Notes: a model not told the origin generated them from the letters alone. A stretch of DNA of 64,000 nucleotides from Macrostomum lignano (GCA_002269645.1 NIVC01001204.1:62001-126000), one strand, 5' to 3'; positions 46,700-64,000 are shown, numbered from the stretch's first letter. Translations and numbers: made by a program.

Positions 46700-48610
46700 T
46701 TTATCAGACTCATCACTCCGAGACTCTTTTCTATCAGCCTTGTCACTCCCAGAATCTTCTTTTCTATCAGACTCTTCACTCCAGGAATCTTTTCTCTATC
46801 AGACTCGCCACTCAAGAATCTTCTCTATCAGACTCGTCACTCCAAGAATCTCATGTAACAGACTCGTCACTCCAGGAATATCTCTATCAGCCTTGTCACT
46901 CCAGGAATCTCTTCTCTATCAGACTCTTCACTCAAGAAATATCTCTATCAGACTCGTCACTCCAGGAATATCTTCTCTATCAGCCTTGTCACTCCAAGAA
47001 TCTTCTCTATCAGCCTCGTCACTCCAAGAATCTTCTCTATCAGACTCGTCACTCCAGGAATCTCTTCTCTATCAGACTCGTCACTCCAGGAATCTTCTCT
47101 ATCAGACTCGTCACTCCAGGAATCTTCTCTATCAGACTCTTCACTCCAGGAATCTCTTCTCTATCAGACTCGTCACTCCAAGAATCTTCTCTATCAGACT
47201 CGTCACTCCAAGAATCTTCTCTATCAGACTCTTCCCTCCAGGAATCTCTTCTCTATCAGACTCATCACTCCAGGAATCTCTTCTCTATCAGACTCGTCAC
47301 TCCAGGAATCTCTTCTCTATCAGACTCGTCACTCCCGGAATCTTCTCTATCAGACTCGCCACTCAAGAATCTTCTCTATCAGACTCTTGACTCCAGGAAT
47401 CTCTTCTCTATCAGACTCGTCACTTCAAGAATCTACTCTATCAGACTCGCCACTCAAGAATCTTCTCTATCAGACTCGTCACTCCAGGAATCTCTTCTCT
47501 ATCAGATTCGTCATTCCAAGAATCTTCTCTATCAGACTCGCCACTCAAGAATCTTCTCTATCAGACTCTTGACTCCAGGAATCTCTTCTCTATCAGACTC
47601 GTCACTCCAGGAATCTCTTCTCTATCAGACTCGTCACTCCAAGAATCTCTTCTCTATCAGACTCGTCACTCCAAGAATCTTCTCTATCAGACTCGCCACT
47701 CCAAGAATCTTCTCTATCAGACTCGTCACTCCAAGAATCTTCTCTATCAGCCTCGTCACTCCAAGAATACGCTCGTATTCTCTATCAGACTCGTCACTCC
47801 AAGAATCTTCTCTATCAGACTCGTCACTCCAAGAATCTCTTCTCTATCAGACTCGTCACTCCAAGAATCTCTTCTCTATCAGACTCGTCACTCCAATAAT
47901 CTTCTCTATCAGCCTCGTCACTCCAAGAATCTTCTCTATCAGACTCGTCACTCCAAGAATCTCTTCTCTATCAGCCTCGTCACTCCAAGAATCTCTTCTC
48001 TATCAGACTCGTCTCTCCAAGAATCTTCTCTATCAGACTCGTCACTCCAAGAATCTTCTCTATCAGCCTCGTCACTCCAAGAATCTTCTCTATCAGCCTC
48101 GTCACTCCAAGAATCTTCTCTATCAGCCTCGTCACTCCAAGAATCTTCTCTATCAGCCTCGTCACTCCAAGAATCTTCTCTATCAGCCTCGTCACTCCAA
48201 GATTCTTCTCTATCAGCCTCGTCACTCCAAGAATCTTCTCTATCAGACTCGTCACTTCAAGAATCTTCTCTATCACACTCGTCACTCCAAGAATCTTCTC
48301 TATCAGACTCGTCACTTCAAGAATCTTCTCTATCAGACTCGTCACTTCAAGAATCTTCTCTATCACACTCGTCACTCCAAGAATCTTCTCTATCAGACTC
48401 GTCACTTCAAGAATCTTCTCTATCAGACTCGTCACTTCAAGAATCTTCTCTATCACACTCGTCACTCCAAGAATCTTCTCTATCAGACTCGTCACTTCAA
48501 GAATCTTCTCTATCAAACTCGTCACTCAAGAATCTTCTCTATCACACTCGTCACTCAAGAATCTTCTCTATCAAACTCGTCACTCAAGAATCTTCTTTTC
48601 CATCAGATTC
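46700..48610. repeat. Second block of the same 30-bp array (about 63 copies, more diverged)
   Basis: Same unit and orientation, with degenerate ends. Confidence 0.96.
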
Positions 48611-50055
48611 TTCAGAGTCTAAATGGGACCCCTGTTTCTAAATTAAACAATTGTCTGCTTCCAAAGTGGCTCTAAAGAGCTCTTTTATGTCCGTCATCAA
48701 GGTCTACAAAGAGCTGCGCTTGCTTCCTGTTTTGAAGCTTTCAATTTGGGAGTCTTAATCCCGAGGATGAATGTCAGAATTGAATCCCTGCATGGGAGCC
48801 CCCTAGGTCGGCAACGTGGACTCGGCTGGAGTATTTTTCTTTCACAGACCGAGTCCGCAACTTGCAGGAGCTGTTCGCGGATACGAGCTGATGATGCACA
48901 TTTGGGAAGGGAGGGGAAGAAGGAAGGAATAGGAGAGAGGGGAGAGGGGAGAGAGGAGCGGGTTCGACCGGCCTGGCTCATGGTGGCCTAGAAGCAGATC
49001 CTGGAGAGGAAAATATTCCCCATTCTCAGCCTGTTTTCTAAAAAACAGAGATTTTAGTTTTCTGAACTAGACATAAGACATTTAATGTGTGGAGAACCTT
49101 TGTTTCGTTACTCCAAAATGCAGATAATTTATCGGGTTTTCGTATGAGAAAGCAACTCCAGGTTCTAGTTCTAGGCCTCCATGCCTGGCACTATACTTGG
49201 TTAGTCAGCCGAGTGCACATTAGAACGCAAAACTCGAAAGGCCGCACGAGAAATGAATCGAGGGTGTGTAAATCCTGGCGGAACGGGACGGAGAGAAAAG
49301 GGAGTGGACGGTGCTGGGCAGGCAGTGGAGGAGGAAGAGAGAGGTGGGGATGGGACAGAAAGAGCTGAAATTAGGCCTTGGGGTTTGGGCACCACCACTG
49401 CAGCATGGAGCACTAGAGGCCCCAAGCATTCAGCTAGGTTTAAGTAGATGGTTTGCTTCAAATAATTATTTGCTTTCTTTCTGTTAAACTGTGTTGACAT
49501 GTTAGCCTACCGTAGACAAATGAAAATATTCACTGAATTTTTTGACTTGACAACCGAGAACTGACTCGCTGGGCTCGTTCCTAGTAAGCCATGGCTGCGG
49601 GACTGACTGACGGGGAAGAAAGGGCGGAAGAGGCACAGTGTACAGCACCCCCCCCCCCTGGGCGGTTGGACAGATATCCACCACGAGGGACGGGCCTGGG
49701 CAGCTCCTGTAATGTTTTATCCTACACTCATCTCTTGTCCTCACTTTCCCAAAGCTGACCATAAAGTCTGACTGTTGAGTTTAGAGTTTTTTTCAATTTC
49801 GATTTATTATAACTAGTGGACTAAATAAAACCGACCATGCAGGATTTGATGTAATCTGTCAGGCCCTGTCTGTCTGTCTGTCCGCTCTGCTTTCGGATTC
49901 GCTAAGTTATAACTGCTATATTGTAGATCGTATACAACTCAAAATACACTAGCTACACAGTACAGAAAAGTCTATCTTGAAAAAAAACGCAGAGCCACAC
50001 CGCCAACGCAGCGGATATACTCAGCTAGTGACTCACCTCACAGCGGCTGCAGCAA

Positions 50056-50246
50056 ATGGTTCGACTCGCGAGACAGCTGAGGTTGGCTTCTGCCGGAAAC
50101 GGTCGGATCCGTCTGATGCTGGCCACCATCGCTACGTTCGCTTGCGTCACCTGGACTGTCGCTTTGATTAGCAGTGTTGGGAAGTTTGGCGTAAGCGGAC
50201 AGAATGGTCAGATTAGCCTGGAGGATTTCGACAGTATCCAGCAGAG
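50056..50246 (+). CDS. DUF229-family protein copy A, exon 1 (N-terminal membrane anchor)
   Basis: MVRLARQLRL...IRLMLATIATFACVTWTVALISSV hydrophobic segment. Donor AG|GTGAGG at 50247, phase 2. The same 191-nt exon is present in copy B. Confidence 0.8.
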
Positions 50247-50304
50247 GTGAGGGGTTGAGTCTTGAGTCAGTTGGTACTGTATTTTCTGATTGAGGTATCT
50301 AGGT

Positions 50305-50985
50305 GATTTCTTTGGTTGTTAGTTGATTGATTTGGTTGCTAGGTGATTCATTTGGTTGCTAGGTGATTCATTTGGCTGCTAAATGATTTATTTCGTTGCT
50401 AGTTGATTGGTTTGGTTGCTAGGTGATTCATTTGGTTGCTAGGTGACTGATTTGGTTGCTAGGTGATTGATTTGGTTGCTAGGTGATTGATTTCGTTGCT
50501 AGGTGATTCATTTGGTTGCTAGGTGATTCATTTGGTTGCTAGGTGATTCATTTGGTTGCTAGGTGATTCATTTGGTTGCTAGATGAATGATTTGGTTGCT
50601 AGATGATTGATTTGGTTGCTAGATTATTGATTTGGTTGCTAGATGATTGATTTCGTTGCTAGGTGATTCATTTGGTTGCTAGGTGATTCATTTGGTTGTT
50701 AAGTGATTCATTTGGTTGCTAGATGAATGATTTGGTTGCTAGATTATTGATTTGGTTGCTAGATTATTGATTTGGTTGCTAGATGATTCATTTGGTTGCT
50801 AGGTAACTTTTGTTGCTGGATGATTGATTTGGTTGCTAGGTGATTGATTTCGTTGCTAGGTGATTCATTTGGTTGCTAGGAGATTCATTTGGTTGCTAGA
50901 TAAATGATTTGGTTGCTAGATGATTGATTTGGTTGCTAGGTAACTTTTGTTGCTGGATGATTGATTTGGTTGCTAGATGATAATT
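50305..50985. repeat. Intron-1 minisatellite of DUF229-A, 20-bp unit TTGGTTGCTAGGTGATTCAT
   Basis: About 33 copies. Confidence 0.95.
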
Positions 50986-51122
50986 GAATAGACCAGGATT
51001 TTGTTGTTGAGTAGCTGGCTCGATAATTGAGTACGTTGTGTTAGCAGGTGAGTTAAAATCGAAGGCTGACTAAAATTGAACATTTCGCACTCTCCTCATC
51101 ATTGTCATCGAATATCCTTCAG

Positions 51123-51838
51123 CCTGCCCGAGCTCACTCACAAGTCGCAGCGGTGTGTTTCACCCAAATTGCCAGTCACCAACCAGCTCGTCCGAGCCAA
51201 CAGACCCCGACCGATTCCCGCCGATGTCTGTCAGCGTGGAACCTCGAAGAACTGGCTGAGAGTGTCCGAGTCCAGGGTCTACCTCAGGCCGGAGTACTCA
51301 TCGGCCAACTGCACCGCGGAGCCCGTCGTGCGGCTGGACGACCAGTCGAGCGAGTTCGGCAGCGCCAGGCCGCTCCGCAGCGGAGACGAGCTGCCCAGTC
51401 TGGGATTCCGAGCTTCCTGCCAGTCACCAGACCGCACCAGCCGCCACAGCTCCGTCTACTACGGAGTGAAGCGAGCGACGTCGTCTGCAGCCGGCAGTCG
51501 CGGGGGGTCGCCGACCGACAGCTCGGAGCTCGGCAACGTCATCATGCTGGGCCTGGACTCGCTGTCCCGACTCGAGAGCTTGCGGTCGCTGCCCCGAGCC
51601 AGCCACATCATGCAGGACCGCCTTGGCGCCATCACCCTGCAGCAGTACAACATCATGGGAGACGGCACGCCCGCCGCTCTGCTGCCCATCCTGACGGGGG
51701 TTCGGGAGGCCGACATGCCCGAGTCTCGGAAGGGCTTCGCTGGAGCTCGATTTCTGGACGACTCGCTTCGGTGGATCTTCCAGGACCTGCGGGACCGGGG
51801 CTTCCTCACTCTGTACGGAGAGGAGGGCAACTTCATGG
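51123..51838 (+). CDS. DUF229-family (alkaline phosphatase/sulfatase-like) protein copy A, exon 2
   Basis: Acceptor ccttcAG at 51121-51122. Encodes NVIMLGLDSLSR...YNIMGDGTPAALLPILTG, matching the DUF229 motifs (NV...G.DS.SR; YN..GD.T...L...LTG). Donor G|GTGAGC at 51839. Confidence 0.9.
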
Positions 51839-52297
51839 GTGAGCAATTCTGACGCTTAAAGATTACCCAGCGATCACCATTCGCAAACCGCCAAAGTACA
51901 CAATTCACGTCGATCCAGTCAGAGCTCTGTTGCTGCTCCACATTCTGTCTCCGTCTCGGATTCCCTGGCTTAGTCCTTCAGTCGATCCTCTGCACTCTGT
52001 ACAATAATGTCATTCTGTCTTTCAACTTCTCTGGACTTCAGTGGGAAGCAAAGATTTTAGGCCTCTCTGTCCAGAGGCTTTCGCAGTCAAGACGGCTTTA
52101 GCTGAGTAATTACGAGTAGTGAGTTGCCGAGACTTCTTGATTTATTCCGGTGTCCGGTTTCCAGTGTGGGACTTTTGCCTAATAACTATTAAATAAGCTG
52201 TGCTTACCACTACTTTAGCCCTGCATGATCCAGTGATTTTACTTTTTAATGCTCTGTTGCTGGTCTTGACATGGAATTTAACGTCGCAAATTTTCAG

Positions 52298-53091
52298 GCA
52301 CTTTCCAGCTGCGGTTTCACGGCTTCAGACGCCAGCCCACGGATTTCTACCTGAGACCGGCGCTGCTGCAGCAGGAGCGGCTGCAGACCAACGCCATCTG
52401 CATCGGAGACGAGATCGCCAGCGCCAGAATGCTCTCGGCCGTCAAGGATCTCTTCACCCTGTACCCGGACAGGCCCAAGTTCGCCTTCACCTTTTTCGGC
52501 TCTTTGTCGCACGAGAATCAAGACCTGTCTCCCATGGACGCTGAGCTCGTCAAGTTCCTGGATTGGTTCGAGGCCGCCAACCTCAGCAGCAACACCAGCA
52601 TCATTCTGATGTCGGACCACGGCCAGCGGCACGGACCGCTGAGGAACTCCATGCAGGGCAAGCTGGAGGAGTCGCTACCGCTCATGAGCATCGCGCTGAG
52701 CAGGCAGCTGATGAGCCGCAAGAAAGATGCGGCAGAGACGCTGAGGACCAACGCAAATAGACTCACAACGCCTGTCGACATTCACAGGACTCTGTTGAAC
52801 TTATCTGGACTCAGAGACTCTACCACGCTCGCAGCGAGTGGCGCCAGCCTCACGTCGTACTCGCTGATCGATGAGGCCGTTCCGGAGACTCGCAGCTGCT
52901 CAGATGCGGGCATTCCGACTCACTGGTGCTCGTGTCTGCGGCTGAAGAAGATTCAAGAGCCGAGCTCGAACGAGCTGGCCGTGAGAGCCGCTCGGTTCGC
53001 AGTGAACCAGATGAACTCGGCCACTGAGCCGTTCCGACACCTGTGCCATGAGCTGCAGCTGGGGAATGTCACGGAGGCCGATGTCAGCTTG
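52298..53091 (+). CDS. DUF229 copy A, exon 3
   Basis: Acceptor ttttcAG. Encodes GTFQLRFHGFRRQPTDFYLRP...MSDHGQRHG...GKLEESLP...RLTTPVDIHRTL...CSDAGIPTHWCSC. Donor TTG|GTGAGT at 53092. Confidence 0.92.
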
Positions 53092-53249
53092 GTGAGTGAC
53101 CGCTTGAGTCTTCCTAAAACATGAGGCGCTATATTGATGTCACTGATAGTGGAATGGGTCATGACGCTGAACCTGCAGATCGTGCAGGCGATGGGGTGTC
53201 ATAATGTCAACAGACTGGAATGTCAACTAGTTGCTTAAGCGTCCTTCAC

Positions 53250-53422
53250 TCTCTGACACACCTGTAGACTCTCTGACACACCTGTAGACTCTCTGACACA
53301 CCTGTAGACTCTCTGACACACCTGTAGACTCTCTGACACACATGTAGACTCTCTGACACACCTGTATACTCTCTGACACACCTGTAGACTCTCTGACACA
53401 CCTGTAGACTCTCTGACACACC
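53250..53422. repeat. Minisatellite, 20-bp unit CTCTGACACACCTGTAGACT
   Basis: About 8.5 copies in intron 3 of DUF229-A. Confidence 0.93.
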
Positions 53423-53783
53423 TTCCTTAGTAACGTCGTTTAAAATCGTTAATCGTTTAAAATTTAAAGCTTTCCTCTCTCACTCAAGCCTTTCATTCCT
53501 TTTCGTTGAAACTACTAGCGACTTAATTTCCTAATTTTTTATTATTAAATGATAATTGAACTCGAGAGACTACCAATCTTAGACTGACTTCGTGGGAAAC
53601 TGCCACTGCCTTAGAGTACCTTAAGCATCCAGAAAAATCAAGATGTGATCATAGCCTGTAATATGCAAGCCTGTAAGGTGTTTGTCGGCAATTTATAATT
53701 ACAGAAGCTGGAAATCAGGTGAGAGTAGTGCAGTTTTCCTTTTATAAAATTCACTCCAAGCTGAAGTTGTCGCCTTCTTTTAG

Positions 53784-54689
<906 letters not shown>

Positions 54690-54965
54690 TGCAGACAGGC
54701 CAAGACAAACAGGTAGATGTAGGACAGGCAGATGCAGGACAGGTAGATTCAGAGAGGCAGATGCAGACAGGCAGACGCAGACAGGCAGATGCAGACAGGT
54801 AGATTCAGACAGGTAGATGCAGACAGGCAGACGCAGACAGGTAGATGCAGACAGGTAGATGCAGACAGGTAGATGCAGACAGGTAGATGCAGACAGGCAG
54901 ACGCAGGACAGGCAGATGCAGACAGGCAGATGCAGACAGGCAGATGCAGACAGACAGACGCAGGA
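54690..54965. repeat. Degenerate 14-bp repeat GCAGACAGGTAGAT derived from the ACAG run
   Basis: About 19 irregular copies continuous with the microsatellite. Confidence 0.85.
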
Positions 54966-54999
54966 CAGGCTGCATCAGCTCCAATCTGTCGCACTGCAG

Positions 55000-55305
55000 A
55001 TCAGCGGAGACTTGGCCAAGCGCGAGCGCCACATGGGCCGGGACTTTTCATACAACATGGCCAACAGCGACCTGGTGGCCTCCGGCTACATCACGGTGCG
55101 ACTCTTCGCAAAGCCCAGCAGCGGCCTGTACGAAGCCACCGTGCAGTTCAGCTTGCAGCAGCACAGCGGGTTCTCGGGGGGTCGTCGGATTTTGAAGTTC
55201 CTCTACGTGAGCGAGCCCTCCCGCATCAATCGATACGGCCGGCAGGCTGACTGCATCGCACAGATGCAGCCTCACTTGAGAAAGTTCTGCTTCTGTGAGC
55301 CCTGA
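55000..55305 (+). CDS. DUF229 copy A, exon 4 (terminal)
   Basis: Acceptor ctgcAG at 54998-54999, phase 0. Encodes GLYEATV...SRINRYG.QA.C...LRKFCFC*, the typical DUF229 C-terminus. The four exons total 2007 nt (668 aa). Confidence 0.9.
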   Translation: MSGDLAKRERHMGRDFSYNMANSDLVASGYITVRLFAKPSSGLYEATVQFSLQQHSGFSGGRRILKFLYVSEPSRINRYGRQADCIAQMQPHLRKFCFCEP

Positions 55306-55389
55306 CTTCTCTGCGGCTGACGTTGAAGGTAACTGCTGAGTCTCTCCGATGCACCTTTGAGCTCTCTGACACTTCTAATACCTGTTAAG

Positions 55390-55560
55390 TTCTTGACACG
55401 CCTGTAGACTCTCTGACGCACCTGCAGACTCTCTGACGCACCTGCTGATTCCCTGACACGCCTGCAGACTCTCTGACACACCTGCAGACTCTCTGACACA
55501 CATGTAGACTCTCTGACACACATGTTGAGTCCCTGACACACTTGTGACACACCTGACACA
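55390..55560. repeat. Second cluster of the 20-bp CTCTGACACACCTG(T/C)AGACT minisatellite
   Basis: About 8 more diverged copies just 3' of the DUF229-A stop. Confidence 0.88.
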
Positions 55561-55633
55561 CTTCCGGTGTTAGCCAGAACTGGCGTGACTTAGCGAAACT
55601 CGCTGCAATCTGATGCAATCTCTAGGGTTATCG

Positions 55634-55639
55634 AATAAA
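55634..55639 (+). terminator. Putative polyadenylation signal of DUF229-A
   Basis: AATAAA about 330 nt after the stop. Confidence 0.4.
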
Positions 55640-56039
55640 TTAACATTTCCAATAACTGCTGTCGATTTTTATTTAGACAGACTACAGTATGTAGAAAATT
55701 AGAAAATTGTGTCGCATCATTATGTAGATATGTTAGCTGAAACTGCTGCTTATCCCATACCAGACGAATCGCTTGTCATACGAGTATCATGTTTACAATA
55801 ATTTTTTTTACAAATTAGTCCACGGAATCTAATATATTATCCGCGTATTAAATCATACTAGTACATCTTTTGTTAAGTTTCAACAAAACAAACCTTTTTT
55901 GCAATCGGTTTGAAATTTGATCTCTTTTATTTGCCATTTTGATAATAATTCAGATATTTAGTGCATGGAATTCGATGCTTTCAATGAATTTTTAGTCTAT
56001 GTACCAAAGTTCTCAACTTGACTGACAAGAGCAGAGATG

Positions 56040-57050
56040 CTGAGATGCCAAGGCTCACGGGGGAATTGCTGAGATGCCAAGTCTAACAGGGGGGAATTGC
56101 TGAGATGCCAAGTCTCACAGGGGGGAATTGCTGAGATGCCAAGTCTAACAGGGGGGAATTGCTGAGATGCCAAGTCTAACAGGGGGGAATTGCTGAGATG
56201 CCAAGTCTAACAGGGGGGAATTGCTGAGATGCCAAGTCTAACAGGGGGGAATTGCTGAGATGCCAAGTCTAACAGGGGGGAATTGCTGAGATGCCAAGTC
56301 TCACAAGGGAGAATCGCTGAGATGCCATTGCTCACGGGGAATTGCTGAGATGCCAATGCTCACGGCGGTAATTGCTGAGATGCCAATGCTCACAGGAGGG
56401 AATTTCTGAGATACCAATGCTCACGGGGAATTGCTGAGATGCTAAGTCTTACAGGGGGAATCGCTGAGATGCCAAGTCTCACAGGGGGGAATTGCTGAGA
56501 TACCAATGCTCACGGGGAATTGCTGAGATGCCAAGTCTCACAAGGGAGAATCGCTGAGATGCCAATGCTCACGGGGAATTGCTGAGATGCCAATGCTCAC
56601 GAGGGGAATTGCTGAGATGCCAAGTCTAACAGGGGGGAATTGCTGAGATGCCAAGTCTCACAGGGGGGAATTGCTGAGATGCCAATGCTCACGGGGGAAT
56701 TGCTGAGATGCCAAGTCTCACAGGGGGGAATTGCTGAGATGCCAAGTCTCACAGGGGGGGAATTGCTGAGATGCCAAGTCTCACAGGGGGGAATTGCTGA
56801 GAAGCCAATGCTCACGGGGAATTGCTGAGATGCCAAGTCTCACAGGAGGGAATTGCTGAGATAGCAATGCTCACGGGGAATTGCTGAGATGCTAAGTCTT
56901 ACAGGGGGAATCGCTGAGATGCCAAGTCTCACAGGGGGGAATTGCTGAGATAGCAATGCTCACGGGGAATTGCTGAGATACCAATGCTCACGGGGGTAAT
57001 TGCTGAGATGCCAAGTCTCACAGGGGGGAATTGCTGAGATGCCAAGTCTT
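56040..57050. repeat. Minisatellite, ~28-31-bp unit GGGGGAATTGCTGAGATGCCAAGTCTCACA
   Basis: About 34 copies with G-run length variation, lying between the two DUF229 3' ends. Confidence 0.95.
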
Positions 57051-57889
57051 ATGCCAAAAATGCCAAAAATGAATTAAGGATAGAATAAAAATCCTGGTTC
57101 AGAATTCGCCTCTCGAATTAGGTGGAATACATTGGATTGAAATAAGAATTTTCTTTAACTGAGATGCTGACTGTAATATTGGAATTAAAGTAGGAGAATT
57201 TATACCTGAAAATACTCAAATTTTGGATCTTCATGGGCCTTCAAGCAAAAGCAAAGTATAAAAAACCTAAATGTGTCGCTACCTATTTGAGAAGCAATTG
57301 AGACTCGAATTCGCAGAAACTCGATGCCGTGAAAATAATGACCGAGTGGCCTCGTGCGACTCTCTAATAGTTGCACCATCGAGAACGATGGACTGACTAT
57401 TAGTTAACACCATTTCCAGCTAAATAATTCTGTTGCTGAACAGCGTGGATCTTCATTTTGGGTGAGCCAATCAATTGACTTGCCTATACCGTTAGCAAGC
57501 ACAGGCTCCAGCTCTGTAGTTTTGCATTTTGAGCACACCGCCTTTGGACATGGAGACGGACAGGCAGATAAATGAGCACAGACACAGGCTGGGTGAGTGA
57601 GCGTCTAAGGCTACTGAACTCTGACAGATGGTCGGTCAGGGAACGAATATTTTAAGCATTCTCGCATTGGCACTGCTTGGGATCGCAAAGTGTACAAGCA
57701 ATCTTTGAACCTAACCGAAAATCTATCGTAAACCCAACCTAACCCTGGAGCCAGCAAGCCTACGCTCTCGCATGTATTTTGCACAATTTTTATCCACCTT
57801 AAAACAATTTTTGCTTCAAAACGAGCGCTAACATTAGGAATCCATTGCAGAGTTCAAGTTTTGTAAATTACCCGTCGCCTAGATGCGAC

Positions 57890-58210
57890 TCATGAAGGAC
57901 TGTCACTGACGCCAGTACGGCACAGGCAAAACTTTCGCAGGTGAGGCGCGACCTCAGTGACGCAGTGAGCCTGACTGCCGTACCGGTTGATGCGGGAGGC
58001 CTCCGAAGTGGAGGACAGCAGCAGCAGAGGATTGCCGAAACGCGATCGCTGCAGGCCGAACTGCACCGACGCCTCAAAGAGGCCTCCGTTCGGCTCTGTG
58101 ACGAGGCGGAGCGTCAGGTAGCCGGCAGCGAGCAGCGCCGAGTTCTCCGCGTTGTAGGCCACGTAGCGCCAGCTGACGTGGCGCTCACGGCGAGCCAGAT
58201 CCTCGCTTGC
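57890..58210 (-). CDS. DUF229 copy B, exon 4 (terminal)
   Basis: Acceptor ccgcAG at 58212-58211. Encodes ASEDLARRERH...GLFEASV...SRINRYGSQAHC...LRKFCLC...*. Confidence 0.88.
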   Translation of the reverse strand, partial: ASEDLARRERHVSWRYVAYNAENSALLAAGYLTLRLVTEPNGGLFEASVQFGLQRSRFGNPLLLLSSTSEASRINRYGSQAHCVTEVAPHLRKFCLCRTGVSDSPS

Positions 58211-58325
58211 CTGCGGCGTTGCAGAGGGGGGGGGGAGTAGCTCGGGGGTTGTTCGAATCTGTGCTCGTCCATTTCGGGCTGGTGCACAAAAAATATGTCT
58301 CAGGAAGACTCGAGCGGTCACTCAC

Positions 58326-59119
58326 CAAGCTGACATCGGCCTCCGTGACATTCCCCAGCTGCAGCTCATGGCACAGGTGTCGGAACGGCTCAGTGGCCGA
58401 GTTCATCTGGTTCACTGCAAACCGAGCGGCTCTCACGGCCAGCTCGTTCGAGCTCGGCTCTTGAATCTTCTTCAGCCGCAGACACGAGCACCAGTGAGTC
58501 GGAATGCCCGCATCTGAGCAGCTGCGAGTCTCCGGAACGGCCTCATCGATCAGTGAGTACGATGTGAGGCTGGCGCCACTCGCTGCGAGCGTGGTAGAGT
58601 CTCTGAGTCCAGATAAGTTCAACAGAGTCCTGTGAATGTCGACAGGCGTTGTGAGTCTATTTGCATTGGTCCTCAGCATCTCTGCCGCATCTTTCTTGCG
58701 GCTCATCAGCTGCCTGCTCAGCGCGATGCTCATGAGCGGTAGCGACTCCTCCAGCTTGCCCTGCATGGAGTTCCTCAGCGGTCCGTGCCGCTGGCCGTGG
58801 TCCGACATCAGAATGATGCTGGTGTTGCTGCTGAGGTTGGCGGCCTCGAACCAATCCAGGAACTTGACGAGCTCAGCGTCCATGGGAGACAGGTCTTGAT
58901 TCTCGTGCGACAAAGAGCCGAAGAAGGTGAAGGCGAACTTGGGCCTGTCCGGGTACAAGGTGAAGAGGTCCTTGACGGCCGAGAGCATTCTGGCGCTGGC
59001 GATCTCGTCTCCGATGCAGATGGCGTTGGTTTGCAGCCGCTCCTGCTGCAGCAGCGCCGGTCTCAGGTAGAAATCCGTGGGCTGGCGTCTGAAGCCGTGA
59101 AACCTCAGCTGGAAAGTGC
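58326..59119 (-). CDS. DUF229 copy B, exon 3
   Basis: 794 nt, same length and splice sites as copy A exon 3, near-identical protein. Confidence 0.92.
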
Positions 59120-59879
59120 CTGAAAATTCGCGATGTTAAATTCCATGTCAAGACCAGCAGCGGAGCAAGTGAAATAACTCAATCCTGACTAACTGACTAG
59201 CAACAGAATAAGGACTTCACTGCAAGGTGAAACGAGTGGTAAGCAAAGCTCAACCAATAGTTATTAGGCAAAAGTCACGCCAGAAACGAACAGTGGGTAG
59301 GTCAAGAAATGTCTCTGCAAGTCGCTAATTACTTTACTAAAGCCTCCTTAACTGCCAGAGGCCTAGAACTTCTTGCTCCCCACTGAAGTCCAGGGGAGTT
59401 CAAGGACCGAATGGCTTGTATAGAGTACAGAGGATCGACTGAAGGACTAAGCCAAGAACTTCTACTCGGAGACAGGGAGTTCTAGAGCAGCTGCAGAGTA
59501 ATTTTTTGCGGTTTGTGAGGATGGTGAACCGCTGGGTAATCTTTTAGCGCTGTAATTGCAGTGCCATTTGTCATAAGTTGGAGTTCAAAAGCAATTGCAT
59601 TGCTGAGCCTCTCTGAGCCATAAAAGTCGCAGAAGCCTGAAGACTCCAATGTGTACAGATTACTCTAGGTCCAGACGCCGCCTGTAAAAAATAACAAAGC
59701 AGATCTTCGCCTATTCTAAAAATCAATACGTTTGCCTTGTCTTTTCAGGGTACTCGTACCCTGAAATTTCACCTTAAATGCAAAGTCGCTTCCAACATTC
59801 AGACGAAACAGAAACGAAGCGATGAAGGTGCTCGATATGAGAGAGGCGGAGCTTAATACAGAGTTGTAAGCAGACATTG

Positions 59880-60830
59880 AGGTAATACTTGAGCTAATAC
59901 ATAAGCTAATACATGAGCTAATACATAAGCCAATACATGAGCTAATTCATGAGCTTATACATGAGCTTATACACGAGCTTATACATAAGCTAATACATAA
60001 GCTAATACTTGAGCTAATACTTGAGCTAATACATGAGCTTATACACGAGCTAATACATGAGCTAATACATGAGCTAATACATGAGCTAACACACGAGCTA
60101 ATACACGAGCTAATACACGAGCTAATACATGAGCTAATACATGAGCTAATACATGAGCTAACACATGAGCTAATATATGAGCTAATACATGAGCTAATAC
60201 TTGAGCTAATACATGAGCTTATACACGAGCTAATACATGAGCTAATACATGAGCTAATACATGAGCTAACACACGAGCTAATACACGAGCTAATACACGA
60301 GCTAATACATGAGCTAATACATGAGCTAATACATGAGCTAACACATGAGCTAATATATGAGCTAATACATGAGCTAATACATGAGCTAATATATGAGCTA
60401 ATACATGAGCTAACACACGAGCTAATACACGAGCTAATACACGAGCTAATACATGAGCTAATACATGAGCTAATACATGAGCTAACACATGAGCTAATAT
60501 ATGAGCTAATACATGAGCTAATACATGAGCTAATATATGAGCTAATACATGAGCTAACACACGAGCTAATACATGAGCTAATACATGAGCTAATATATGA
60601 GCTAATACATGAGCTAACACATGAGCTAATACATGAGCTAATACATGAGCTAACACATGAGCTAATATATGAGCTAATACATGAGCTAACACACGAGCTA
60701 ATACATGAGCTAATACATGAGCTAATACATAAGCTAACACACGAGCTAATACATGAGCTAATACATGAGCTAATACATGAGCTAATACTTGAGCTAATAC
60801 ATAAGCTAACACACGAGCTAATTCATAACC
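59880..60830. repeat. Minisatellite, 12-bp unit ATGAGCTAATAC (intron 2 of DUF229-B)
   Basis: About 78 copies; gives the VLAH ORF. Confidence 0.96.
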
Positions 60831-60904
60831 AACCGGGTGCTCACCTATGAGGTTGTCCTCCTCCACGTCCAGTTGGTCTACTTCATTCAGAGTAATAATA
60901 CGCG

Positions 60905-61196
60905 GTCGTAATAATAATAATTAATAACATCTGCCCTAATGGACAGATATGCAACTGACAGCTCAGCGACTACGCGGCGCATCTGAAGGCTGCGTACGGC
61001 TGTTCAGTCCAAGGAATGGGGGATCCCTCAATTACTCCCAGCTAATGCTGGCATTCATTTTGCAGCTGGGTGAACTGAAGCAATGCAGAGTTAAGTGTCT
61101 TGCTCAAGGACACAAATTGTTCCTAGTGGGTCGAGAATCGAACCCCCGATCTTCGAGTCATGAGTCCGATGCTCCAACCAATAGGCTACCACCCCC
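60905..61196 (-). mobile_element. tRNA-derived SINE with CORE/V-like central domain
   Basis: The - strand reads GGGGGTGGTAGCCTATTGGTT (A box) ... GGGTTCGATTCT (B box), then TTGTGTCCTTGAGCAAGACACTTAACTC...CAGTTCACCCAGCTGCAAAATG, resembling the CORE/V-SINE domain, and ends in an (ATT)n-like tail at about 60905-60925. Confidence 0.75.
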
Positions 61197-61811
61197 ATTC
61201 AGAAAGACAGAAATGGTGAATCAATTTGAAAGTCTGAGTATCATAGATAGAATTCACTAATAGATAGCATGCAGTTTTGCGACTAGATGCACTAGCTCCA
61301 TATATTTTGCACTTTTGTGACTGCGCGCTTATTCCAATGTGGTCCAAGGCACGTTGCAATATTTAGGTGCGAGCTTCTTTCTCTGCGCAAAACGCTACCT
61401 GAAATCTAACCTAGGGGAGCAAAATTGCAGTCAACGACTCTAGACGAAAGAACTCTAAAATTTTACAAGAAAGTCACAGGTCACTGTTCTTGACATGCAT
61501 TTAGAGTCCAATTCATTGATGCCCAGTTTTGGTGATTTGATAACGTTTAAATAATGCCAATGCCTTAAAGTATCCTTGAATAGGATGAATCGAGATACCT
61601 CAGCCAGTGAACTCTCAACGATCCCTTTAGCTTAATACCGTGCATGGACATTATTAAATAAATCGCACGGCAAAAAAATTGTCGTGGGATTCACTTCAAT
61701 GAGTACCAACCCAAAGTTCACCAAATTTGAGAACGTATCTTCTCTACTCTTTACTTTTTCAGGGCGAATGCTTCAGAACTCAAGCTGACAACTCAAAAAA
61801 CGCGCTCTCAC

Positions 61812-62527
61812 CGTATTCAGACTGCTCCTCTCCGTACAGAGTGACGAAGCCCCGGTCCCGCAGGTCCTGGAAGATCCACCGAAGCGAGTCGTCCAGAAAT
61901 CGAGCTCCAGCGAAGCCCTTCCGAGACTCGGGCATGTCGGCCTCCCGAACCCCCGTCAGGATGGGCAGCAGAGCGGCGGGAGTGCCGTCTCCCATGATGT
62001 TGTACTGCTGCAGGGTGATGGCGCCAAGGCGGTCCTGCATGATGCGGCTTGCTCGGGGCAGCGACCGCAAGCTCTCGAGTCGGGACAGCGAGTCCAGGCC
62101 CAGCATGATGACGTTGCCGAGCTCCGAGCTGTCGGTCGGCGACCCCCCGCGACTGCCGGCTGCAGACGACGTCGCTCGCTTCACTCCGTAGTAGACGGAG
62201 CTGTGGCGGCTGGCGCGGTCTGGCGACTGGCAGGAAGCTCGGAATCCCAGGCTGGGCAGCTCGTCTCCGCTGCGGAGCGGCCTGGCGCTGCCGAACTCGC
62301 TCGACTGGTCGTCCAGCCGCACGACGGGCTCCGCGGTGCAGTTGGCCGACGAGTACTCCGGCCTGAGGTAGACCTTGGACTCGGACACTCTCAGCCAGTT
62401 CTTCGAGGTTCCACGCTGACAGACATCGGCGGGAATCGGGCGGGGTCTGTTGGCTCGGACGAGCTGGTTGGTGACTGGCAATTTGGGTGAAACACACCGC
62501 TGCGACTCGTGAGTGAGCTCGGGCAGG
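61812..62527 (-). CDS. DUF229 copy B, exon 2
   Basis: 716 nt, same acceptor and phase as copy A. Contains NVIMLGLDSLSR and GDGTPAALLPILTG. Donor G|GTGAGA at 61811. Confidence 0.9.
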
Positions 62528-62821
62528 CTGAAGGTTATTCGATGACAATGATAAGGAGAGTGCGAAATGTTCAATTTTAGTCAGCCTTCGATTTTAACTC
62601 ACCTGCTAACACAACGTACTCAATTATCGAGCCAGCTACTCAACAACAAAATCCCGGTTTATTCGACCCAAGCAATCACCTTGTAACCAAAATAAGCACA
62701 TAGCAACAAGAATCAATCATCTAGCAACCAACATAATCACTTAGCAACCAATCCATTACCTAGCAACCGCAACCTCAATCAGGAAATACAGTATCATCCG
62801 ACTCAAACCTCAACCGCTCAC

Positions 62822-63012
62822 CTCTGCTTGATTCTATCGAAAACCTCCAAGCTAATCTGACCATTCTGTCTGCTATTGTCAAATTTTCTGACACTGCTGA
62901 TCAACGCGACAGTCCAGGTGACGCAAGCGAACGTAGCGATGGTGGCCAACATCAGACGGATCCGGCCGTTTCTGGGAGAAGCCAACCTCAGCTGTCTCGC
63001 TAGTGGAATCAT
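62822..63012 (-). CDS. DUF229 copy B, exon 1
   Basis: MIPLARQLRL...IRLMLATIATFACVTWTVALISSV, 191 nt as in copy A. Donor AG|GTGAGC. In-frame upstream ATGs exist (63021, 63099). Total CDS 2022 nt (673 aa). Confidence 0.8.
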
Positions 63013-64000
63013 TTGCTGCATCCGCTTCGAGGGAGTATGTCCACTGCGTTGGTGATGTGGCTCTGCGTTTTTTCCGAGTTTTTTCTGAGCTCTATGCAAG
63101 CTTGATTGAGGTAGCTTGGTCAGTCTGTGTGATATTTTGGTGGTTGTTGTAGACAGCTAGGCAGGAGAGGCTTGGTAGAACTACAGGCTAGCTTGTCTCT
63201 CTATGCGGAAATGTTGAGACGATTTGAGCTAGTAGCATGGAGCCAGTTATTTTTGTCTCCCTTGATCTTCACTTTTAGCATCGTGATGACTGCGATATTG
63301 CTACTTTCAGAGGGGAGACGAAAAGGAACACGATACGAAAACGACTTTGTCTATGGCAGTCACGAGCCAATAGGACGGAACGGGGAGGAAAGGGAATGCT
63401 TAAAGGGAAGATAATGTACATCAGCAATAATGTACATTTTAGCCAGTCCACTGAAATGTACATGGCGCTTTAGGCTGGAATTCCGAGAAAGACAATAAAA
63501 ATTAGGGTGGGGCGAAGGGTCGTATGGAAAGGCGCTGTTGGAGGGTTTCAGCTTGGGGGTAAAAACCAATAAATGAGCCTTGGTGTTAAAAATACATTAA
63601 AATGGTTCTGTTTAACTTACTACTGAACCAAAAGTAGTTTACACGCAAATGTGCTGAGTAGCCCATCCAATTATTATAGTATCTGCCCTGGGTCTTCCCT
63701 GGGCCCCTGGCGAGGTGGGTGGAGAGAGGAGGTGGCCGTTGGGTTTGTTTACAAGCTGTCGTGGTGTGGAAAAAGTATAACGTGTAAACTAAGAAAGCCT
63801 GATTGTCTATGGCTAACGCTTCTCTTTCATCATTTCTAACCTAAATATCACGTGATGTATAATCGTACAGTCATGCAGTCCCTCGGCGAGTGCTCAGAAA
63901 CGCAAGGAATTCACACATGAAATGCACAGCAGCTTTCGTTTTCCGCTTGCCATACCATTTTCAACCGTTTTTGAAGTGACTTTTCAAAAAAAAACTTTTG

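Follow-up and report, generated by a model that had tools for sequence, protein, structure and literature searches.

How can two neighbouring genes be nearly identical in the middle of their coding sequence and strongly diverged at one end? The question is raised by two DUF229 genes, here called A and B, that lie tail to tail in a 64,000-nt stretch of DNA from the flatworm Macrostomum lignano (the window). The original prediction took them for old inverted duplicates whose catalytic core is repeatedly homogenised by gene conversion while the C-terminal end of each copy diverges. The answer involves a third gene, C, which lies just beyond the window.

Contig NIVC01001204.1 of M. lignano (L003) is identical to the window over 16,111 nt and runs past its end, where it holds gene C. 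The cluster reads A (+), then B and C (both -), and the window truncates it 1.2 kb before C is reached. C shares the orientation of B, from which it is separated by 2.2 kb on the upstream side. In hand-built models, A and B are two intact open reading frames with GT..AG introns. Exons 1 to 3 measure 191, 716 and 794 nt in both genes, whereas exon 4 is 306 nt long in A and 321 nt long in both B and C. Gene A, which is without annotation in the deposited record for the contig, is 98 % identical to Mlig021190g1 of another subgenome copy. The gene content of the locus can be corrected accordingly, to three intact DUF229 genes versus one fused model and another gene missed in the deposited version. 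Coordinates are collected in Table 1. Minisatellites dominate a blastn comparison of L001 with the window unless they are filtered, and comparisons were therefore filtered or run per segment.

Table 1. Features of the DUF229 cluster; positions refer to the window unless the contig is named
Feature	Position	Strand	Remarks
Gene A, DUF229, 668 aa	exons 50056-50246, 51123-51838, 52298-53091, 55000-55305	+	Pfam E = 1.3e-88
Gene B, DUF229, 673 aa	exons 63012-62822, 62527-61812, 59119-58326, 58210-57890	-	Pfam E = 1.9e-89
Gene C, 680 aa	L003 10001-14416 = extended window 69652-65237	-	exons 200/728/794/321 nt
Older A/B stratum: 74 nt upstream of ATG, exon 1, start of intron 1	49982-50373	+	pairs with B 63073-62690, 83-90 %
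Inverted repeat arms around exon 1, 261 nt	50036-50296 / 62772-63032		87 %
20-nt minisatellite, about 34 copies, intron 1 of A	50299-50981	+	lies between the 88 % and 98 % strata
Same 20-nt minisatellite in B, about 5 copies	62666-62781		
Tract T1 in A: exon 2 without its final 12 nt, and the 137 nt of intron 1 that precede it	50986-51825	+	pairs with B 62664-61825, 98 %; inverted repeat arms of 840 nt
Tract T2 in A: exon 3 with intron flanks of 48 nt (intron 2) and 31 nt (intron 3)	52250-53122	+	pairs with B 59167-58295, 98 %; inverted repeat arms of 873 nt
Spacer between the stop codons of A and B	55306-57889	.	includes 31-nt minisatellite 56038-57049
C-type 3' block of B: exons 3 and 4, intron 3 and the 3'-most 540 nt of intron 2	57886-59710	-	97.5 % over 1831 nt to C; alignment of L003 12591-14420 with window 59710-57886
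End of B exon 2 (12 nt) and start of intron 2 (~60 nt)	61750-61824	-	C-type (97 %), unlike A
Start of the 2.2-kb B-C intergenic region	63013-64000	-	

The two genes of the window form a patchwork. From exon 1 to exon 4 their nucleotide identity is 88, 96.8, 98.7 and 64 % (23 differences in 191 aligned positions, 23 in 716, 10 in 794 and 107 in 297), and divergence is heterogeneous among exons (chi-square 385, p = 3e-83). Three pairs of inverted repeat arms, also compared by blastn, cover exon 1, most of exon 2, and exon 3. Exon 3 carries nine synonymous changes and a single T/M replacement. In exon 2 there are five scattered replacements, to which the last four codons are added (GNFM in A, QSEY in B). 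The mosaic identity of the inverted pair, the exon lengths and the replacements had all been predicted, and all are seen in the gene models.

The tracts of high identity include intron flanks and end abruptly. A and B differ at 4 positions in the last 137 nt of intron 1 and at 50 in the adjoining 63 nt; at 4 in the last 48 nt of intron 2 and at 47 in the adjoining 60 nt; and at 3 in the first 31 nt of intron 3 and at 51 in the following 60 nt. Within the tracts the intron flanks are 91-97 % identical, and just past each edge ungapped identity is about 20 %. Intron 2 had been described as intermediate in homology, which is true of some patches (about 120-180 nt, 80-85 %) but not of the intron as a whole, the remainder being unalignable (459 nt in A, 2692 nt in B).

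When A is compared with C, the two core tracts alone align. T2 is present in C with identical edges (97 %), and T1 is common to C as well from about 51245-51311 onward (96 %). The older stratum at the 5' end of A and B, where exon 1 is 88 % identical with a dS of 0.29, has no similarity to C.

Painted against A and C in steps of 100 nt, gene B falls into A-only, shared and C-only blocks. Its A-like part starts at position -74 and takes in most of exon 2, and it is C-like (97-99 %) over the final 12 nt of that exon and onward to the end of exon 4; in the 3' block, resemblance to A is limited to the exon 3 portion. Upstream of -74, no homology was found between the flank of B and the upstream regions of A and C. 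Several partner-specific parts of B have diverged by about 12-24 % from the donor: identity is 83-88 % in the exon 1 region, 80-87 % in proximal intron 2 and 76 % in the 3' flank. B is thus a hybrid in which an A-type 5' end is joined to a C-type 3' end within the shared core of exon 2. The C-type end of exon 2 explains the divergent codons GNFM and QSEY. Likewise, because exon 4 of B is C-like, the exon 4 divergence between A and B is the old divergence between A and C (dS about 1.2) and did not arise within the pair.

These observations change the original prediction in its central point. A closed two-gene system, with exon 4 of B diverging in place, does not agree with the 97-99 % identity of B to C in distal intron 2, intron 3 and exon 4. 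An exon 4 derived from a third locus by chimeric duplication had been named as the outcome that would speak against the proposal, and the C-type 3' end of B is essentially that outcome. The idea of old duplicates with a homogenised core survives for the A and C lineages; it does not apply to A and B, as B is chimeric. A simple inversion by NAHR between C and A was also considered as the sole origin of B and rejected: its A-5'/C-3' product would have the orientation of A, and intact A and C would not be kept.

Synonymous divergence can be read directly as a series of strata. Between A and B, dS is 0.29 in exon 1, 0.04 in 5' exon 2, 0.03 and 0.05 in the core of exons 2 and 3, and 1.16 in exon 4. 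Between A and C the corresponding values are saturated, 1.58, 0.039 and 0.027, and 1.16; between B and C they are saturated, 1.45, 0.07 and 0.044, and 0.062. Copies of the same paralogue in different subgenomes differ by 0-0.1, and the core dS among A, B and C (0.03-0.07) is no higher. The first exons of A and C are unalignable, and the distance between these genes in 5' exon 2 and exon 4 matches that to the genome's other DUF229 clade. The per-exon dS check proposed with the original prediction (0.29; 0.03-0.05; 1.16 for A and B) is therefore strongly non-uniform, as anticipated.

Within the core, variants are not sorted by paralogue. Over 1310 nt in eight gene copies, 27 sites are informative and split the copies in 20 different ways; the four-gamete test fails for 202 of 351 site pairs, and 0 sites favour monophyly of A. 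By the Hudson-Kaplan minimum, 5 or more recombination events took place in the exon 2 core and 11 or more in exon 3. Neighbour-joining trees by segment keep the paralogues apart in exon 1, 5' exon 2 and exon 4, except that B and C are mixed in exon 4, and mix them in the core. These trees were built on three subgenome copies in place of sister-species orthologues; a protein search for such orthologues found M. lignano copies only, the next matches being about 32 % identical. Nor do the paralogues cluster cleanly by subgenome in the core, where the pattern is reticulate, unlike the textbook tree in which genes cluster by genome. A run-length test gave P <= 1e-4 for A-B and B-C, and P = 0.04 for A-C, which is uninformative with three sequences. 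This test is a simplified in-house permutation of the order of polymorphic sites, of the Sawyer or GENECONV type. No GC3 excess was found in the converted core relative to the ends (0.79-0.84 vs 0.74-0.84), so the signature of GC-biased conversion is absent.

The assembly Mlig_3_7 is reported to contain three subgenomes that are about 2 % SNPs apart, and the three contig copies of the cluster fit these subgenomes (PMC10733133). The large-scale mosaic is seen again in three contigs with distinct variants. Chimeric B is found on two subgenome contigs that carry different variants of it. The independent ML2 assembly encodes both variants and also A; its proteins P0026 and P0023 match one B variant each at 99.5 % identity, P0026 from exon 2 onward. 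Part of the fine-scale sharing of variants could stem from short-read polishing of a PacBio assembly with eight near-identical copies, or from exchange between subgenomes.

One subgenome copy (L002) has lost B by a crossover between C and B inside exon 3. Its gene keeps the C type past a 6-nt indel and the earliest diagnostic sites in exon 3, and is B-type thereafter. The downstream flank of B comes next (98 % over 820 nt), and the 5' half of B and the C-B spacer are missing. The spacer between A and B has the same orientation in 3/3 subgenome copies, which are collinear, and no inversion of it was seen among them. The argument that inverted orientation allows conversion without deletion is sound, but B and C are direct repeats, and between them a deletion did occur.

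The history that best fits these data, with a probability of roughly 80 %, is that of a three-member DUF229 cluster with old A/C duplicates, a chimeric B, recurrent conversion of the core and a C/B crossover. A and C would be the old duplicates, and the mosaic of A and B would have three layers. The first would be the ancient A/C divergence, found in exon 4 and at the very end of exon 2 (12 nt). The second would be the age of the A-type 5' end of B, recorded in exon 1. The third would be recent and repeated non-allelic gene conversion, holding two islands at dS 0.03-0.07 in A, B and C: most of exon 2, and exon 3 with its 48-nt and 31-nt intron flanks. The islands encode the predicted metal-binding and nucleophile motifs. 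Conversion would act wherever homology survives and halt where the introns can no longer be aligned, and for this reason the sharp edges would be common to the gene pairs. Recombination of this kind would also have ended in a crossover between C and B, which are direct repeats, giving a C/B hybrid and the loss of B.

Non-uniform dS, near-identical neutral sites and replication in assemblies together indicate that homogenisation of the core by conversion is real, as had been proposed: synonymous sites and intron flanks are nearly identical alike, and the pattern holds in three contigs and an independent assembly. Interlocus gene conversion and NAHR are real at this locus, by a mechanism that is well known. 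The events would probably have had the direction and order given above, and the 5' end of B may have been acquired by conversion or by chimeric duplication. Exchange may also be going on today, because the divergence of the core is no greater than that between subgenomes.

Other explanations would dispense with one or more of these steps. It is improbable that A and B are a closed pair of old inverted duplicates in which the core was homogenised and the C-terminal exon of B diverged in place. Such a pair would show heterogeneous dS, tracts that include intron flanks and genes inverted tail to tail, all of which are observed; it would not show a B that matches C at 97.5 % in distal intron 2, intron 3 and exon 4, whose exon 4 has the length found in C (321 nt vs 306 nt in A) and a dS of 0.06 to C versus 1.16 to A, and whose last four exon 2 codons are C-type. 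C is unlikely to be an assembly duplicate of B, from which it is distinct in its flanks, exon 1, intron 1 and 5' exon 2. A single chimeric duplication, for instance by A-to-C template switching inside exon 2, could have made B without later conversion, leaving one clean switch in the exon 2 core, unique flanks and several partner-specific parts about 12-24 % diverged. This is distinctly improbable, since one level of divergence per donor would be expected, whereas the A-B dS is 0.29 in exon 1 and 0.04 in 5' exon 2, the 137 nt of intron adjoining 5' exon 2 are 97 % identical between A and B, unlike exon 1, and B and C are 80-87 % identical in proximal intron 2 but 97.5 % in the distal 1.8 kb. 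Whatever the origin of B, the A-C dS of 0.03-0.04 in the core versus 1.2-1.6 at the ends needs conversion, and the reticulate sharing of variants is likewise contrary to a single event.

Mlig_3_7 is a PacBio assembly with three subgenome copies, a type prone to error (PMC10733133), and a 1-nt deletion within a run of G in one copy (L4_A) is probably erroneous. Cross-mapping of reads might in principle have homogenised exons 2 and 3, or mis-joined haplotypes might have made B. That the locus is such an artefact is very unlikely: the same large-scale mosaic is present in three contigs with distinct variants, both B variants and A are also encoded in ML2, an independent assembly, the tracts differ by 1-3 % and are not identical, and polishing is unable to turn about 40 % divergence into 98 % identity with base-sharp edges. 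Purifying selection alone, preserving the catalytic core without exchange of sequence, can practically be dismissed. Although the core encodes family-invariant motifs and dN/dS is low, synonymous divergence is 30-40 times lower there than in exon 4 or 5' exon 2, the intron flanks are near-identical too, and the core has only 61-66 % protein identity to the other DUF229 clade.

Understood as a converting cluster with a chimeric member, the locus resembles several known systems. The human RHD and RHCE genes are inverted paralogues, tail to tail, in which gene conversion acts on the scale of exons and hybrid alleles exist. They share with A and B the inverted arrangement, a short spacer, whole-exon tracts with short intron flanks and modular hybrid genes. 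In M. lignano, however, a third paralogue in direct orientation participates, the gene ends have a dS above 1, and the comparison is between subgenome copies of a neopolyploid instead of human alleles.

The globin genes provide a second parallel, with concerted evolution by HBG1/HBG2 conversion and the delta-beta hybrid of Lepore-type unequal crossing-over; opsin and CYP21 arrays are similar. As in the Lepore case, C and B are direct repeats, and a crossover in the homogenised tract gave a 5'-C/3'-B hybrid with loss of the intervening copy. The difference is that the junction lies here in a coding exon of an uncharacterised enzyme family. In the palindromes of primate Y chromosomes, arm-to-arm conversion likewise takes place between inverted sequences of one chromosome without deletion. 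Their arms are near-identical over the full length, while identity here is confined to two islands of 0.6-0.9 kb within diverged genes. The locus does not belong to the palindrome class, as exon 1 is 88 % and exon 4 is 64 % identical and most intron sequence is unalignable.

The assignment of the proteins to DUF229 and to the alkaline-phosphatase fold agrees with the original prediction, from Pfam, conserved motifs, a structural model and Foldseek. Proteins A and B match Pfam DUF229 (PF02995) over their full length (298 and 301 bits vs a cutoff of 25), with weaker matches to Sulfatase and Phosphodiest. The motifs D-S-x-S...R, G-D-G-T and D-H-G lie at invariant positions; D209, S210, S212, R218, G243, T246, H410 and G411 are invariant in 15 homologues from flatworm, insect, mollusc and nematode. 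They belong to the metal-ligand and nucleophile motifs, the nucleophile itself being a putative assignment. The AF2 model (pLDDT 79, pTM 0.75) has an alkaline-phosphatase-like alpha/beta fold, which Foldseek matches to S1 sulfatases, EptC, LtaS and YejM (E 7e-9 to 1e-6, probability 1.0, target-normalised TM 0.4-0.57). A sequence search of the PDB gave a weak arylsulfatase match alone (6hhm, E = 2e-4). DUF229 is an uncharacterised animal branch of the alkaline-phosphatase superfamily, with a predicted fold like that of sulfatases and phosphoethanolamine transferases. In the full-text literature, no functional study or characterised member was found for DUF229, PF02995 or IPR004245, matches being mostly to DUF229x phage-defence names, and nothing relevant was found on gene conversion in Macrostomum.

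As an instance of gene conversion and unequal crossing-over, the locus is clear-cut but not out of the ordinary. Since the mechanism is a textbook one and the protein family is without known function, its general significance is modest. It illustrates cleanly how conversion and crossover combine in a neopolyploid flatworm, and one route by which the three subgenomes of M. lignano diverge structurally (three genes vs two). There is also a practical consequence: because exons 2 and 3 are effectively shared, paralogue-specific probes, RNAi and guide RNAs must target exon 1 or exon 4.

In terms of modules, A has an A-type N-terminus and an A-type C-terminus, C is C-type at both ends, and B has an A-type N-terminus and a C-type C-terminus. 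It is conceivable, though rather unlikely, that homogenisation of the core only is more than a by-product of where homology persists, and is a recurrent and possibly selected mode in Macrostomum DUF229 genes, with a uniform catalytic core and with N-terminal membrane anchors and C-terminal beta-domains kept distinct and recombined as modules. If so, the combinatorial variants would share a single enzyme chemistry but differ in localisation or substrate pocket, and their copy number would be diverging among the three subgenomes. A second DUF229 pair, P0029 and P0003, is arranged head to head and has a single tract of 1597 nt (97.9 %) covering exons 2 and 3, with nothing else shared.

Two DUF229 genes, A and B, lie tail to tail in the window. 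Models for both were built from the ORF list and splice signals, each translates without a stop, and both proteins match Pfam DUF229 (E about 1e-88). Exons 1-3 have the same lengths in the two genes (191/716/794 nt), whereas exon 4 is longer in B (321 nt) than in A (306 nt). The introns differ far more, at 876 vs 294 nt (intron 1), 459 vs 2692 nt (intron 2) and 1908 vs 115 nt (intron 3) in A and B, respectively, and mini- and microsatellites account for most of these length differences.

Coordinates of the DUF229 genes, shared tracts and repeats (window positions unless a locus is named)
Feature	Coordinates	Strand	Description
Gene A, exons 1-4	50056-50246, 51123-51838, 52298-53091, 55000-55305	+	668 aa
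Gene B, exons 1-4	63012-62822, 62527-61812, 59119-58326, 58210-57890	-	673 aa
Gene C	L003 10001-14416	- (as B)	exons 200/728/794/321 nt, 680 aa; outside the window
Inverted arms	52250-53122 / 58295-59167		873 nt, 98 % (repeat finder)
Inverted arms	50986-51825 / 61825-62664		840 nt, 98 % (repeat finder)
Inverted arms	50036-50296 / 62772-63032		261 nt, 87 % (repeat finder)
B: 74 nt upstream, exon 1, intron 1 start	63073-62690	-	A-like 83-90 %; no C similarity
B: intron 1 end, 5' exon 2	62664 to ~62340	-	A-like 98 %; C highly diverged
B: remaining exon 2	~62340-61825	-	96-100 % to both A and C
B: last 12 nt of exon 2, intron 2 start	61824-61750	-	C-like 97 %, unlike A
B: mid-intron 2		-	patchy C-like matches only, 80-87 %
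B	59710-59168	-	C-like 93-99 %
B: exon 3 and flanks	59167-58295	-	about 98 % to A and to C
B: intron 3, exon 4	58294-57886	-	C-like 97-99 %; 64 % to A
30-nt minisatellite array	17618-48596		about 1023 copies, 31 kb, 91 % matches
Intron/spacer repeat	50299-50981		20-mer x34
Intron/spacer repeat	53784-54970		(CAGA)n x227
Intron/spacer repeat	56038-57049		31-mer x33
Intron/spacer repeat	59878-60826		12-mer x79

Identity between A and B changes abruptly along the genes. The inverted arms are reproduced by blastn when one gene region is aligned to the reverse-complemented other, and mismatches in exons 1-4 number 23/191, 23/716, 10/794 and 107/297, a strongly heterogeneous rate (chi-square 385, p = 3e-83). 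Of the ten differences in exon 3, nine are synonymous and one is a T/M replacement; in exon 2, five replacements are scattered and the last four codons differ as well. The near-identity tracts end sharply within the introns. There are 4 differences in the last 137 nt of intron 1 vs 50 in the adjoining 63 nt. Intron 2 shows 4 over its last 48 nt and intron 3 shows 3 over its first 31 nt; just outside these two stretches, identity is at chance level. The inverted pair with mosaic identity described in the original prediction is thus real by repeat finder, blastn, per-exon differences and sharp edges, and its replacement counts for exons 2 and 3 were correct.

The closest protein matches of A and B are other Macrostomum lignano proteins. 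The window's own contig in assembly Mlig_3_7 (NIVC01001204.1, here L003) matches window 47890-64000 at 100 % identity (16,111 nt) and runs past the window end, where a third paralogue, C, is found with its stop codon 2.2 kb upstream of the B ATG. The deposited 680-aa model Mlig002440g1 (protein P0021; L003 10001-21763, or 69652-57890 in an extended window) fuses exons 1-2 of C to exons 3-4 of B, and gene A (50056-55305) has no deposited model on this contig. Contrary to the annotation, the cluster, ~20 kb in all, holds three intact DUF229 genes.

Synonymous divergence (Nei-Gojobori dS) is far from uniform among the three genes. Between A and B it is 0.03-0.05 in the core, that is, most of exon 2 plus exon 3, vs 0.29 in exon 1 and 1.16 in exon 4.

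Synonymous divergence per segment
Segment	A-B	A-C	B-C
Exon 1	0.29	saturated	saturated
5' exon 2	0.04	1.58	1.45
Exon 2 core	0.03	0.039	0.07
Exon 3	0.05	0.027	0.044
Exon 4	1.16	1.16	0.062

In protein sequence, A and C are roughly as far from each other as from the other DUF229 clade of M. lignano (P0003-P0005), with 47-49 % identity in 5' exon 2 and 47-55 % in exon 4. Core identity is 97 % between A and C and 61-66 % between either of them and that clade. With ends at this old level and a near-identical core, A and C are old duplicates with a young core.

The third gene also explains B. When B is painted against A and C in 100-nt windows, with HSPs alongside, its upstream end resembles A and its downstream end C. 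B shares exon lengths 191 and 716 with A and 321 with C. Both the diverged last exon of B and the four codons that end its exon 2 are therefore C-type, and B is an A/C chimera with an exon 4 of the C lineage. The original prediction had read A and B as two old inverted duplicates with a converted core and a diverging exon 4. Conversion of the core stands, but the two genes are not a closed pair, and the reading is incomplete because B derives its last exon from the lineage of C.

Most loci in Mlig_3_7 are present three times, one per subgenome (S, L1, L2), and these copies differ by SNPs at about 2 % overall and 1.1 % in coding sequence (PMC10733133). Three copies of the cluster were recovered: A, B and C in the window copy, A, B and C in a second contig (L004), and A plus one C-like gene in the third (L001/L002). 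ORFs are intact in every copy except L004 A, where exon 2 (gene-region coordinates 1548-2262) has a frameshifting 1-nt deletion in a G run; this is probably a PacBio homopolymer assembly error, or else marks a pseudogenised subgenome copy. Core dS between paralogues (0.03-0.07) does not exceed the 0.02-0.07 obtained when one gene is compared across subgenomes.

The evidence points to repeated and recent exchange in the core. In 1310 nt of core from eight gene copies, the 27 parsimony-informative sites give 20 different splits, monophyly of A is backed by none of them and that of C by only three, and of 351 site pairs, 202 are incompatible by the four-gamete test. By the Hudson-Kaplan minimum, the exon 2 core requires at least 5 recombination events and exon 3 at least 11. 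In a simplified Sawyer-type permutation, the longest shared fragments A-B and B-C each have P <= 1e-4. Neighbour-joining trees mix the paralogues in the core but place them cleanly apart in the outer segments (exon 1, 5' part of exon 2, exon 4), except that B and C are mixed with each other in exon 4. Subgenome affinity also switches along the cluster: the window copy is nearest L004 at the A end, where exons 1 and 4 differ at 0-1 positions, and nearest L002 at the C end, where C exon 1 is identical and exon 3 has 5 differences. This switch suggests exchange between subgenome copies in addition to that between paralogues.

Selection and assembly error might each be proposed as the source of such a mosaic. 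Selection on the protein is ruled out as the cause of the young A/C core, since the homogenisation extends to synonymous sites and intron flanks. Mis-polishing, the alternative raised with the original prediction, could contribute to some fine-scale sharing of variants. It cannot yield base-sharp islands of 98 % identity where the surrounding sequence is about 40 % diverged. The mosaic is moreover seen in three contigs, each with distinct variants, and the independent assembly ML2 encodes both B variants (protein P0026, 99.5 % to the window B; P0023, 99.5 % to L004 B) as well as A variants. Homogenisation reaching synonymous sites and intron flanks, together with incongruent trees, makes core gene conversion among these paralogues well supported, as had been proposed.

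The subgenome copy with only two genes provides an example of crossing-over. Its "C" gene (P0002, Mlig002440g3; L002, NIVC01000085.1, 10001-15235) is 98 % identical to the window contig's C from the upstream flank to the stop, and is followed by the 3' flank of B (98 % over 820 nt), not that of C. Its diagnostic sites remain C-type past a 6-nt indel that precedes exon 3 and over the first C-specific positions within that exon, then turn B-type in the distal part of the exon and stay so. The gene is a C/B crossover hybrid with its junction inside exon 3. Unequal crossing-over between C and B as direct repeats, within the homogenised exon 3, would produce this hybrid and a deletion of ~6.6 kb. 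Since exon 1 dS between A and B (0.29) is far above subgenome divergence, B is older than the separation of the subgenomes, which makes the two-gene arrangement the derived one.

Mechanistically, this small cluster combines non-allelic gene conversion with crossover by NAHR, a kind already well known. Both processes are familiar at the RH, globin, opsin and CYP21 loci, which the DUF229 cluster would resemble in mechanism.

A second cluster repeats the pattern. On NIVC01001165.1 (L005 / L007), two DUF229 genes (P0029 and P0003) are arranged head to head with about 9.5 kb between them and have a single common tract of 1597 nt (97.9 %) covering exon 2, a short intron 2 and exon 3. Alignment of the two genes found no similarity outside this tract; their proteins are 25 % (exon 1) and 52 % (exon 4) identical. 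Homogenisation confined to the core is therefore a pattern of the family in the M. lignano genome. A stray partial exon 2 copy lies on the opposite strand at L005 8552-8986, and NIVC01001016.1 (L006) was grouped with this cluster.

In each of the three proteins, one hydrophobic segment follows a short basic tail near the N-terminus (aa 20-38 in A and B, aa 23-41 in C), which suggests that exon 1 encodes a type II signal anchor. D209, S210, S212, R218, G243, T246, H410 and G411, invariant in 15 homologues from flatworm, insect, mollusc and nematode, are all encoded in exons 2-3. Foldseek matches an AlphaFold2 model (pLDDT 79, pTM 0.75) to S1 sulfatases, the phosphoethanolamine transferase EptC, LtaS and YejM (E 7e-9 to 1e-6, probability 1.0), which supports the alkaline-phosphatase-superfamily fold originally predicted. 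Judging by its spacing from D209, T246 (in GDGTP) would occupy the position of the sulfatase Cys/Ser nucleophile; a Thr nucleophile there would point to phospho-transfer, not sulfatase chemistry. Most of a C-terminal beta-domain (strands 556-636) comes from exon 4; this domain lies outside the Pfam DUF229 model but has Cys, Arg and Tyr residues conserved across the family. A and B thus have anchor and core in common and differ in the C-terminal domain; B and C have core and C-terminal domain in common and differ in anchor and stem.

The single 30-nt array fills almost half of the window and is strongly skewed towards C over G on the + strand (GC skew about -0.54); the matching interval of L001 is only about 4 kb. 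The L001 region aligns to the window from about 10 kb on, chiefly over minisatellites, and carries an acyl-CoA oxidase gene (ACOX Pfam domains; 1-2250) about 8 kb upstream of A. Copy numbers of the intron and spacer repeats vary between paralogues and subgenome copies; the spacer 31-mer array spans about 1 kb in the window vs about 3.3 kb in L002.
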